The position numbers and the translations under genes were made by a program. A stretch of 63,542 nt of DNA, filler included, from Octopus bimaculoides (Eukaryota), in the NCBI RefSeq assembly GCF_001194135.2. It is 8 parts of 8 records of this genome, joined end to end, with 100 filler letters (N's around TTAATTAATTAA, not from the genome) between each part and the next. Parts side by side here need not be neighbours in the genome. Positions count along the whole stretch, not along the records: positions 23,821 to 51,551 come from NC_068985.1; 7 more parts are not named here. One strand, given 5' to 3'. Shown here one piece after another: positions 31,191 through 44,557 of the stretch. Within the stretch, counting starts at the first letter, position 1, and every line of letters starts with the position of its first letter. Below the pieces are notes generated by a model. It had not been told where the DNA came from. It saw only the letters and a list, made by a program, of their open reading frames with translations, and ran no database searches.

Positions 31191-33864
31191 CGTGAAAATT
31201 AGTTATATTACACACACACACATACACACACACACACACATACACACACACACACACATACACACACANNNNNNNNNNCACACATACACACACACACACA
31301 CATACACACACACACACACATACACACACACACACACAAGGACATACACAGACATCATCCACAGATACATACATATATGTGTGTATGTGTATGTATGTAT
31401 ATATATATATATATATATGTATGTATGTATGTATTTCCATATACATGTTTGGTTTGTATATATATGCGCGCGTGTGTGTGTGTAGTTGAAATTTATAGAA
31501 AGACAAAAGATGAAAGCAGGTGTATGAACAATANNNNNNNNNNNNNNNNNNNNNNNNNNNNNNNNNNNNNNNNNNNNNNNNNNNNNNNNNNNNNNNNNNN
31601 NNNNNNNNNNNNNNNNNNNNNNNNNNNNNNNNNNNNNNNNNNNNNNNNNNNNNNNNNNNNNNNNNNNNNNNNNNNNNNNNNNNNNNNNNNNNNNNNNNNN
31701 NNNNNNNNNNNNNNNNNNNNNNNNNNNNNNNNNNNNNNNNNNNNNNNNNNNNNNNNNNNNNNNNNNNNNNNNNNNNNNNNNNNNNNNNNNNNNNNNNNNN
31801 NNNNNNNNNNNNNNNNNNNNNNNNNNNNNNNNNNNNNNNNNNNNNNNNNNNNNNNNNNNNNNNNNNNNNNNNNNNNNNNNNNNNNNNNNNNNNNNNNNNN
31901 NNNNNNNNNNNNNNNNNNNNNNNNNNNNNNNNNNNNNNNNNNNNNNNNNNNNNNNNNNNNNNNNNNNNNNNNNNNNNNNNNNNNNNNNNNNNNNNNNNNN
32001 NNNNNNNNNNNNNNNNNNNNNNNNNNNNNNNNNNNNNNNNNNNNNNNNNNNNNNNNNNNNNNNNNNNNNNNNNNNNNNNNNNNNNNNNNNNNNNNNNNNN
32101 NNNNNNNNNNNNNNNNNNNNNNNNNNNNNNNNNNNNNNNNNNNNNNNNNNNNNNNNNNNNNNNNNNNNNNNNNNNNNNNNNNNNNNNNNNNNNNNNNNNN
32201 NATATATATATATATATATATAAATATACAAGAATAAGGGCAGAGAATCGTCAATTAATAATAGAATTAATAATTAACAATTCTGCCAAGTAGTTCAGTA
32301 TGAAAAAAACCTTTATCGGTAAGACTATTTATCATTATAAATTATAAATATACAGGGATTAGCAATTGAGTTGCTTCTCCAACATACTGAAAATTTAGAA
32401 ATAGCAGTCAAAGAACTACTGATTCCAAACTACAAATTTTCTCTAAAGTGGATGGCGATATTTATGGCACACATAGAACAAAAAACCGGAGGGAACATGT
32501 ATATACACACAGACACTCACACACACAAACACATACACACACAAACACATACACACACACACGAGCAAAAGTAGGATTTACAAATTCTGCCAGATATTAA
32601 GGAAGCATGCAGTATTAAAAGGTTTTCGTTAAATGTTCAGCAATCAGATACCTGTGCATGTAAGCACAATACATATCACAGGTAAATAAATCCTCATGCA
32701 TGACAGGTAAATCCAACAATACTTTTGCAGAATGTCGAGAAATTCGGAGTATTTAACAACAAAAGTACATAAGAAAAAAAATCATATCTTTACTTTAGAT
32801 CTCACCTTAAATTGTTTCGATTGCCTTAACATATATATACACGCACACACATACACACACATGTACAAATACAGATATATACACAAAAATATATATACAT
32901 ATATATATATATATACACAAATATATATACATATATATATATATATATATATATATNNNNNNNNNNNNNNNNNNNNNNNNNNNNNNNNNNNNNNNNNNNN
33001 NNNNNNNNNNNNNNNNNNNNNNNNNNNNNNNNNNNNNNNNNNNNNNNNNNNNNNNNNNNNNNNNNNNNNNNNNNNNNNNNNNNNNNNNNNNNNNNNNNNN
33101 NNNNNNNNNNNNNNNNNNNNNNNNNNNNNNNNNNNNNNNNNNNNNNNNNNNNNNNNNNNNNNNNNNNNNNNNNNNNNNNNNNNNNNNNNNNNNNNNNNNN
33201 NNNNNNNNNNNNNNNNNNNNNNNNNNNNNNNNNNNNNNNNNNNNNNNNNNNNNNNNNNNNNNNNNNNNNNNNNNNNNNNNNNNNNNNNNNNNNNNNNNNN
33301 NNNNNNNNNNNNNNNNNNNNNNNNNNNNNNNNNNNNNNNNNNNNNNNNNNNNNNNTCTCTCTCTCTCTCTCTCTCTCTCTCTCTCTCTCTCTCTCTCTCT
33401 CTCTCTCTCTCTCTCTCTCTCTCTCTCTGTCTGTCTGTGAAACCAAACTCAGACCTCACCCAACAACAACAACAACAGCAGCAACAACAACAAAACAGCT
33501 GCATCAGATACTACAGCAAAAGTAATAACGTATCCACTTCCTCACCATAAACAAAACACCCTTCACTCCACACACACACACACACACACACATACACTCA
33601 CACGCACATACACACACATATACACTCATATAATATGTGTGTGTCTGTGTGTGTGTGTGTGTGTGTGTGTGTGTGTGTGTTCACAAAAATCCAACAGCAA
33701 ACATATCTGTTTGCCTATTCCGACTTTCAACAACATCCCACCCATCCCTAACTCAAGTATACAAAGGAAGAGGCACTTCTTAGCATTCGCATTTATACTC
33801 ACATAACACTGCTACTTCACGTCTATGCTCTCTGCTTCTCGACATCTGTCAGAGTAAAAGGAAA

Positions 33865-34006
33865 ATGGAGAATGAAAATGAAAGGAGTTCTGTTACAACA
33901 TCCAATAATTCGTCCGCTCTATCGAACTACTACAACCGCCATCCGGGACGCCGAAATTACGTTCGCAGAGCTGTGCTCTTTTTCTCAGGATTGGAGGACG
34001 AATTTG
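33865..34006 (+). CDS. Paralog A first coding exon: MENENERSSVTTSNNSSALSNYYNRHPGRRNYVRRAVLFFSGLEDEF(G)
   Basis: Acceptor-like tctgtcag(ag) at 33851-54, aaaATGG context, 47 codons to the phase-1 donor G|gtaacg. Homologous to 44416-44557, with synonymous substitutions in this frame. Confidence 0.55.
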
Positions 34007-34089
34007 GTAACGTCACAATGAATTACCTTTTTTTAAAATTATTGTTGTTGTCATTGTTGTTGTTGCTGTTTCATTTTTTTTTTTTTTGA

Positions 34090-42937: not shown

Positions 42938-44415
42938 TATATATATATATATATTCATATAGGCACATGAGCATATATATTCTGTCTCTGTATGACTGAC
43001 GGTCTGTCTGTCAGTGAATCCTCTTTCACTCTCTCTTTCTCACACGCACATGTACGCAGATTTATACATACACATTCTGAATATGTTTGTCTGTGTATGT
43101 ATATATACATCGGTGCATCTGTATGTGTACACATATACATGTCTGCATGTGTGTGTGTATTTGTGCATGTGTGTGTAAATATATATATATACCTATCTGT
43201 ATATGTGCATATGTGTGTATTTATGCATGTATATGTTTGAGTTTATACGTATATTAGTAAGCACATTAAATTCCTTCACGTTCTGCGATGTGTACGGCAG
43301 GAGATGAAATCCGTTTGATGCCAAATTTTATTGCACCACATGTCTCTCTCATGCTCTCTCTCTTTCTACCTCACTCTGTGTGTATGTGTGTGTGTGTGTG
43401 TGTGTGTGTGTGTGTGTGTGTGTGTGTGTGTGTGTGTGTGTGTGTGTGTGTGTGTGTGTGTGTGTGTGTGTGTGTGTGTGTGTGTGCGCGCGTGTGTGTG
43501 TGCATATGTGTGTAAGCGAGTTATTCAAATCCACCCTACAACAACTACAACAACAGTAGCTACATAGCAACGACAACGAAATTATATATCATGTATGTAT
43601 AATTATATATAATATTATATTTATATAAGTATATATACAGAATTAACAACATCACGATCATCATGAACAACACAAAAACAAACTTGCAAACTTAACATGC
43701 TGACACCAACACACACACACACACACACACACACATACATATGCGCGCACACAGATCCATGCGCACACATACACACACACACATACGCACTCATGCACAC
43801 GCATACAGTGATACTACATGCGTGAATACCAAACACTGAGAGCGGCAAGCATGTACACACACGTAGGCACGCACTCTGAGAGGAAACAATGCGACCAGCC
43901 ATCACTATATAGAATAATATACAATAGACACATACATACGTTCAAAGCACATTCATACACACACACACACACACACACACACACACACACACACACACAC
44001 ACACACACACACACACACACACACACACACACACACACACACACACACACACACACACACTCACACACACTCACACGCATACGCTCACACGCATACGCTC
44101 ACACAAACATACATCCCACACGCGCCTACGTGTGTGTGTGCGCTTGTGCACGTATAGTGTTTTTACACCATAACAGAGACATACCTGTTCACCAATACCA
44201 GCATCATTTCTCAACCACCTCCGCACCTTGTTAATGCACACACAACACACACACACACACACACACNNNNNNNNNNCACACACACACACACACACATAGA
44301 GTAAGTGACATTCTTTCAAATCATACTTACACACACACACATACATATACTCTGACAAATTCACATCGCTGTATACTGCTTATTCACTTTCCATCTGAGG
44401 TTTTTACAAAGTAAG

Positions 44416-44557
44416 ATGGGGAATTCAAGGAGTTCACTTGAGCGGTCAAACCATGCTTATCCGCGATCGAACTACTACCGCCGTCATCCGGGGTTACGCT
44501 CAGAACCGCATATCGACAAGGTCGAGGCCGATCTTACAGCATTGGCGCGAGAAAACG
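44416..44557 (+). CDS. Paralog B first coding exon: MGNSRSSLERSNHAYPRSNYYRRHPGLRSEPHIDKVEADLTALAREN(G)
   Basis: aagATGG context, exactly 47 codons to the phase-1 donor G|gtaata, and conserved with 33865-34006. The MGxxxS start matches the N-myristoylation consensus. Confidence 0.55.

Follow-up and report, generated by a model that had tools for sequence, protein, structure and literature searches.

A duplicated candidate first coding exon in an old tandem segmental duplication of the Octopus bimaculoides genome

The DNA studied here, 63,542 nucleotides (nt) from Octopus bimaculoides (hereafter the window), consists of eight joined parts of the genome, and our analysis covered the part at window positions 23821-51551 (27.7 kb; hereafter the piece), which derives from NC_068985.1. 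In this piece, two homologous blocks on the plus strand, copy A and copy B, lie in an old tandem segmental duplication, and each of them contains a candidate first coding exon of the same length. The two copies differ from each other in a coding-like manner in a single reading frame, the one that begins at their common ATG. We interpret them as a duplicated 5' coding exon pair, most likely representing alternative first coding exons of one gene whose shared downstream part would lie outside the piece, and assign this reading a probability of roughly 40%. The more specific proposal of an unannotated, cephalopod-restricted gene with two tandem alternative first exons that share an SNYYxRHPGxR motif, one of them with an N-myristoylation signal, and with no relatives among about 15 billion catalogued proteins, is somewhat doubtful. 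From the sequence, it is plausible that the duplicated block is an unannotated, lineage-specific 5' coding exon. The coordinates of the main features are compiled in Table 1.

The homology of the two copies was assessed by local alignment of two 181-nt regions, which yielded a score of 229 compared to 62.6 ± 11.2 for dinucleotide shuffles (z = 14.9). Within the piece, the copies are reciprocal best matches, located about 10.55 kb apart on the same strand, and the runner-up matches, with scores of 128 and 117, are gappy noise. Identity over the block is 65% (100 of 153 aligned columns). In the window, the 27-mer ATCGAACTACTACNNCCGNCATCCGGG and the 18-mer GGTAANNTCACNATGAAT have exactly two occurrences each, compared to 0.00 and 0.14, respectively, predicted by shuffles; AAGGAGTTC is common to both copies, at 33882 and 44427. 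Neither tblastn nor nucleotide alignment detected a third copy in the piece; two candidates, at 47941 (minus strand) and 42361 (plus strand), were discarded as gappy noise. The distance between the ATG and the conserved core is 56 nt in copy A and 50 nt in copy B, and the middle segment measures 37 nt and 43 nt, respectively. These two compensating length differences of 6 nt are genuine, with some ambiguity in the position of the second one. Features kept in both copies are the ATG, the frame, the core S-N-Y-Y-x-R-H-P-G-x-R and the end G-N-[VI]-T-M-N, encoded across GGTAA. An earlier interpretation made from the DNA alone (the sequence-only reading) had given translations, coordinates and 142-nt exon lengths that we reproduced exactly. 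It had also described a purine at -3 and a G at +4 of both ATGs, shared nucleotide blocks and compensating in-frame indels; both contexts indeed have A at -3 and G at +4, and the blocks and indels were recovered as described above.

The piece is AT-rich (38% GC), packed with microsatellites, full of repeats and interrupted by nine internal runs of N, none of which falls within either block. A 10-N gap (44267-44276) is situated within a (CA)n run 140 nt 5' of the ATG of copy B, and a 789-N gap (35970-36758) lies between the copies, bordered by a TA-rich microsatellite on its right side and by simple TA/TC-rich sequence on its left side; further gaps are found at 46901-47219 and 48709-49303. Since the 10-N and 789-N gaps lie outside the blocks, they affect only the spacing between the copies, the region upstream of copy B and possibly hidden sequence between the copies, and leave the reading frames untouched. 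The spacing of 10,551 nt is for this reason an estimate.

Table 1 Features of the piece. Positions are those of the window.
Feature	Position	Strand	Description
Copy A homology block	33857-34023	+	Starts 8 nt ahead of the ATG and ends 17 nt beyond the proposed donor; local alignment and motif matches
Copy B homology block	44408-44574	+	Local alignment and motif matches
Copy A candidate first coding exon	33865-34006	+	142 nt, 47 codons plus 1 nt (MENENERSS..SNYYNRHPGRR..EDEF-G); proposed donor G/GTAACG at 34006/34007
Copy B candidate first coding exon	44416-44557	+	142 nt, 47 codons plus 1 nt (MGNSRSS..SNYYRRHPGLR..AREN-G); proposed donor G/GTAATA at 44557/44558
Copy A upstream region	33751-33854	+	Weakly similar to 44286-44399; candidate 5' untranslated region/core promoter
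Copy B upstream region	44286-44399	+	Weakly similar to 33751-33854
Dead retroelement 3' fragment	34753-34857	-	0.75 kb downstream of copy A; contains QKIALLGTAHILRK; collinear duplication marker
Partner dead retroelement 3' fragment	45495-45668	-	0.94 kb downstream of copy B
Short interspersed nuclear element (SINE)-like element	34885-35074, 35094-35286, 35429-35617, 39137-39310 (-), 45048-45235		About 190 nt, CpG-rich; at least 5 copies, 66-88% mutual identity
Pogo/Tigger-type DNA transposon remnant	40922-42350	+	Frameshifted; CENP-B_N (3.2e-10), HTH_Tnp_Tc5, DDE_1 (5e-10); between the copies

The ATG frame of the two copies was compared with the other frames in several ways. Local alignment of the two translations with BLOSUM62 scores 101 in the ATG frame and 28-65 in the five other frames. 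Simulated random sequences with the same mask of matches, mismatches and indels gave 56 ± 12 in the ATG frame (P = 7e-4), and 70 ± 12 when this null was restricted to pairs with both open reading frames (ORFs) intact (P = 0.005); both 53-codon frames were open in only 0.6% of the simulated pairs. Counting by the method of Nei and Gojobori (NG86) resulted in proportions of synonymous (pS) and non-synonymous (pN) differences of 0.65 and 0.33, respectively, and thus in a pN/pS of 0.51 for the ATG frame (Fisher p = 0.0008, 51 aligned codons); limited to the 36 codons of the unambiguous ungapped blocks, the same test gave p = 0.027. In the shifted frames, the same columns yielded pN/pS values of 1.37-1.56 (+1) and 0.91-1.02 (+2). 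Both net length differences are multiples of three, and frame 0 has a coding-like composition across the codon positions. The GC content of the blocks, 45% in copy A and 54% in copy B, exceeds that of the piece, as does the observed-to-expected (o/e) ratio of CpG with 1.39 and 1.48, respectively, compared to 0.79, which places copy B among the top 1% of windows. These results lend moderate statistical support to a coding reading, in the ATG frame only. Both copies are likewise open in the +1 frame, over which the sequence-only reading had favoured the ATG frame; this preference holds, as the +1 frame acts as non-coding sequence (pN/pS 1.4-1.6, similarity score 31-35). The accompanying claim that the differences are mostly synonymous applies inside the hand-picked cores but not to the unambiguous blocks overall, in which 6 codons differ synonymously and 15 non-synonymously, and two of the synonymous pairs listed for it, aac/aat and aca/acg, are inconsistent with the exon end proposed in the same reading, as they fall beyond its donor. 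Of the purifying selection on a duplicated gene that had been put forward, the homology and the coding-like substitution pattern confined to the ATG frame stand, but any constraint is mild.

The wider surroundings of the blocks identify the pair as part of a tandem segmental duplication in which at least 2 kb is collinear and the units are offset by about 10.6 kb. Both units have, in the same order, (CA)n, the weakly similar upstream region, the block, (ATT)n, the minus-strand retroelement fragment and (AAT)n. The retroelement fragment has only two copies in the piece, with 66% nucleotide identity between the units, i.e. about the same similarity as the exon blocks, which indicates that the duplication is old and that any constraint on the blocks is mild and concentrated in the cores. 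The SINE-like elements occupy differing places in the two units and were thus inserted after the duplication. Additional collinear matches between 39.5-39.9 kb and 50.0-50.7 kb proved to be (CA)n and a second SINE-like family and were not counted as evidence. This second family, which is characterized by CCTTGTGAGTGGATTTGGTAGACGGAAACT, is represented by two adjoining copies at 50257-50380 and 50491-50651 and by a partial copy at 39805-39878.

In both copies, an in-frame stop codon (33781-3 in copy A and 44353-5 in copy B) precedes the ATG with no other in-frame ATG in between, and the ATG has a Kozak-like context. Similarity extends weakly into the upstream regions (-110 to -9), with an alignment score of 110 compared to 70.7 ± 11.2 (z = 3.5) and with indels that are out of frame. 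Candidate acceptors are found 12 nt and 16 nt before the ATG in the two copies, and their phases differ. Copy A also has an upstream ORF of 10 codons (ATG at 33825, TAA at 33855-7) between a TATA-like box (33794-7) and the main ATG; the equivalent stretch of copy B contains no upstream ATG.

We propose that a short 5' coding exon and the sequence directly upstream of it were copied when part of an octopod genome underwent tandem segmental duplication long ago, and that both copies may since have retained the ATG, the frame, the core and the GGTAA end under mild protein-level constraint. Each copy would be transcribed from its own promoter as an alternative first coding exon, and the two G/GTAA donors, being of the same phase (phase 1), would splice to common downstream exons beyond the end of the piece. 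The product would be one protein with two alternative 47-residue N-termini. The equal length and, if G/GTAA is the donor, equal phase of the two candidate exons are what joining a common exon 2 would require, and they argue for one gene rather than two. The isoforms might differ in membrane anchoring, as the N-terminus of copy B (MGNSRSS) fits MGxxx[ST], the consensus for N-myristoylation, and that of copy A (MENENER) does not. It is already known that tandem duplication of an exon can provide an orphan gene with alternative N-termini.

Several observations weigh against this explanation. Metazoan donors usually have a G at +5 and an A at -2, and both proposed donors lack these nucleotides and are weak by this standard. 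The identity of the blocks is not above that of the co-duplicated dead retroelement fragment. The differences between the copies are distributed over the codon positions as [7,5,9] and [4,4,4], without a simple excess at third positions; these counts were superseded by the NG86 and simulation tests. A given frame is open in 16% of all 142-nt windows of this microsatellite-rich piece, so that ORF openness alone is weak evidence. The sample is tiny (51 codons) and the pair was chosen post hoc, for which reasons we hold only cautiously that the ATG frame has probably been under protein-level constraint. Database searches add to these points. A word-indexed search with a two-sequence profile in 5.8 billion protein clusters found no protein sharing words with either peptide, and when 1.84 billion representatives were searched exhaustively with a profile, all matches were at motif level only, to a group of repeat proteins and a cytochrome b5 protein. 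Among the sizeable ORF segments between 33.7 and 51.5 kb, Pfam recognised only the pogo/Tigger remnant and no downstream exon, and the concatenated unique ORF segments of both strands between 34.0 and 51.5 kb (2063 residues) matched no protein. The protein database includes the proteomes of O. bimaculoides and O. sinensis with their transposon-derived proteins, and the Tigger-like ORF, used as a control, retrieved CENPB-domain proteins of these two species as its closest relatives at 66-82% identity, which makes the negative protein results meaningful. The listing, and probably also the index, is confined to one representative per 90% cluster, so that an isoform with an alternative N-terminus could be missed if its representative starts with another first exon. 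Scans of metagenomes yielded no locus, either for the DNA core or for patterns back-translated from the peptides.

Much of this would also be expected if the blocks were a non-functional relic, either duplicated non-coding DNA or a long-dead exon, in which the shared ORF and the signs of constraint are residual or due to chance in a small sample selected post hoc. Such a relic would account for a block identity close to that of the dead fragment and little above that of the upstream flank, for the missing third-position excess, for open frames that are common in the piece and include the +1 frame of both copies, and for the failure to turn up an annotated octopus protein, a downstream exon or a homologue. 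We nevertheless consider it rather unlikely, as signals restricted to frame 0, namely the similarity of the translations even given open frames and the low pN/pS in both versions of the test, would not easily arise by chance, joint openness of both frames is rare in the simulations, the indels are in frame, and both copies have kept a CpG o/e of about 1.4-1.5 despite a divergence of about 35%.

Alternatively, the blocks could be fragments from the coding 5' end of a mobile element, or of another dispersed repeat family, with a low or middle copy number; their coding-like pattern would then stem from selection on the active element instead of a host gene. The piece is saturated with SINEs, the pogo/Tigger remnant and retroelement fragments, its young repeats are likewise CpG-rich, and a pN/pS below 1 is also shown by diverged copies of repeats. 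We regard this origin as improbable: the block is present in just two copies in 27.7 kb, compared to at least five for the SINE-like element, no terminal inverted repeat or target-site duplication was found around either block, there is no Pfam transposon domain, and the billions of proteins searched, including the transposon-derived ones of octopus, contain no match. Moreover, a single segmental duplication explains the collinear flanking markers more simply.

The end of the candidate exons deserves separate consideration, as neither the homology (15 of 18 nt) nor the open frame ends at the proposed donor; both extend for another 17 nt, and the three differences in this stretch are synonymous or exchange V for I. 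Reading through the donor, both copies continue with G-N-[V/I]-T-M-N followed by hydrophobic residues, to a total of 74 residues in copy A (stop at 34087-9) and of 129 residues in copy B. On this basis, together with the weak donors and the strongly hydrophobic nature of both continuations, the copies could be stand-alone single-exon ORFs with an unspliced GGTAA, which would encode small tail-anchored or single-pass membrane proteins. This we hold to be very improbable, since simple repeats, namely T-rich sequence, (TTG)n and (ATC)n, account for the hydrophobic runs, and copy B reaches its 129 residues by passing through about 350 nt of (ATC)n microsatellite. Beyond ATGAAT, the nucleotide alignment requires a gap of 2 nt, so that the frame is not common to the copies, and the sequence is simple repeat; shared coding thus stops within a few codons of GGTAA, which fits an intron start nearby. 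Pfam searches with both read-through proteins returned nothing but noise (best E-values 0.09-0.21, 12-13 bits compared to cut-offs of 27-32), in line with the previous impression that neither peptide has a recognisable domain, and an exact look-up found neither read-through ORF on record. We favour the phase-1 G/GTAA as a putative genuine donor with a conserved intron start. Within 34011-34250 on the plus strand, the read-through stop of copy A directly follows a T14 homopolymer, a type of sequence whose length is error-prone; one T more or less would extend the ORF by about 54 codons (SERAVPVIKVTMGYKYMKLNITT) to 34250, and this extension has no database match.

That the copies are instead the first exons of a tandem pair of separate paralogous genes, each complete and with several exons, as the sequence-only reading had it for a small-protein family, also seems to us very improbable: the evidence for homology and constraint would suit such genes as well, and the gaps at 35970-36758, 46901-47219 and 48709-49303 could conceal exons, but the visible 10.4 kb of unit 1 and 7 kb of unit 2 revealed no downstream exon, the ORF segments between and after the copies have no domain or protein match, and no relative was found in any database. 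Apart from SINEs, microsatellites and the retroelement fragment, no unique block is common to 34.0-44.4 kb and 44.6-51.5 kb. Two complete genes in units of 10.6 kb would be expected to share more blocks of exon size, whereas duplicated 5' exons of a longer gene would not, and alternative first exons of one gene thus fit better.

Tandem arrays of variable first exons with their own promoters are known from the clustered protocadherins and UGT1A. The octopus pair resembles these systems in having homologous candidate 5' coding exons in tandem on one strand, each with its own ATG and with a proposed donor of the same phase, in its origin by local duplication and in the lack of downstream exons between the copies. 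In contrast, the variable exons of protocadherins and UGT1A measure 0.9-2.4 kb, encode whole domains, are present in many copies and join known constant exons, whereas the octopus locus has two 142-nt copies only, which encode no domain and would be spliced to putative constant exons. Tandemly duplicated, mutually exclusive exons, as in Dscam, 14-3-3 zeta and the exon pairs of ion channels, are a second parallel with regard to equal length, equal predicted phase, detectable homology and a short conserved stretch past the donor. Those exons are internal and have acceptors, whereas the octopus candidates carry the start codon and their candidate upstream acceptors differ in phase. Furthermore, no docking or selector complement of the post-donor motif TCACRATGAAT was found above chance, and docking-site pairing is thus unsupported. 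In CYB5R3, which encodes NADH-cytochrome b5 reductase, alternative first exons switch between an N-myristoylated membrane form and a soluble form. The octopus pair is similar in that one N-terminus (copy B, MGNSRSS) fits the MGxxx[ST] consensus and the other (copy A, MENENE) does not, but its peptides have no sequence similarity to CYB5R3.

The matches of the exhaustive profile search were rejected as homologues, as they comprise a 9-residue motif only. Five of these proteins, P0002, P0004, P0006, P0008 and P0009, have 115-155 residues and contain, besides a hydrophobic segment at the N-terminus, 3-5 repeats of [LA]SD[YW][YF]xRHP[GE]. Their motif is nearly the same as that of the octopus peptides (SDYYQRHPG compared to SNYYRRHPG; whole-library E-values of 2e-5 to 6.5e-4), but the scores sum 3-5 short repeats, the architecture of a signal or transmembrane segment plus repeats is different, and there is no similarity outside the motif. 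The likeness is most likely due to chance or convergence. These five proteins belong to no Pfam family, show a sub-threshold resemblance to the cytochrome b5 core and apparently form an uncharacterised repeat family. The same search picked up P0007, a triple cytochrome b5 protein, and S-N-Y-Y-x-R-H-P-G indeed resembles the [ST]-x-[FY]-x-x-x-H-P-G part of the cytochrome b5 domain PF00173 (..Y-D-[VL]-[ST]-x-[FY]-[LV]-x-x-H-P-G-G). However, PF00173 matched neither peptide even at E ≤ 10, and the peptides have HPGR or HPGL instead of HPGG, lack both a hydrophobic beta-strand ahead of this motif and a second histidine at the required distance, and are, with 47 residues, too short for the 75-residue fold.

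Should the exons prove real, the octopus annotation would gain a lineage-specific coding gene or pair of isoforms that is so far unannotated, and the locus would be a small, clean example of a local 10-kb duplication creating alternative N-termini, one of them possibly membrane-anchored. If they are not, the pair is a caution that pairs of ORFs bounded by ATG and GT form readily in microsatellite-rich genomes. It is frame-specific tests that carry weight here, and not the openness of an ORF. With either outcome, the consequence is local and has no bearing on a long-standing open question.

With regard to other features of the piece, a search against Rfam 15 at a permissive threshold gave only sub-threshold microRNA-like noise from microsatellites, none of it at the two blocks, and a search for transfer RNAs found none. 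A stop-free segment on the minus strand at 50738-50965 (YCFYIWDSTAAMHTDVLDRTQRRATRLI) has no Pfam match and appears to resemble the C-terminal end of ORF2 proteins of retrotransposons without long terminal repeats. At 47509-47723, an imperfect palindrome of about 215 nt has a folding energy of -74.5 kcal/mol compared to -49.3 ± 4.2 kcal/mol for shuffles (z = -6.0); its sole Rfam match is sub-threshold noise, and it could be a hairpin or an element similar to a miniature inverted-repeat transposable element. On the same strand as copy A and upstream of it, a GC- and CpG-rich stop-free segment of 101 codons (26320-26622, plus strand) has arginine-rich and acidic stretches (RNRRRGRRGGRIRF and SDQSSDEEDEG) and has no Pfam match. 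Finally, a tandem repeat with a period of about 64 nt at 25190-25420, the minus strand of which reads as repeated DRLTTRSTYDQIDLRP, is the most CpG-dense spot in the piece, with up to 19 CpG per 150 nt and an o/e of about 2.

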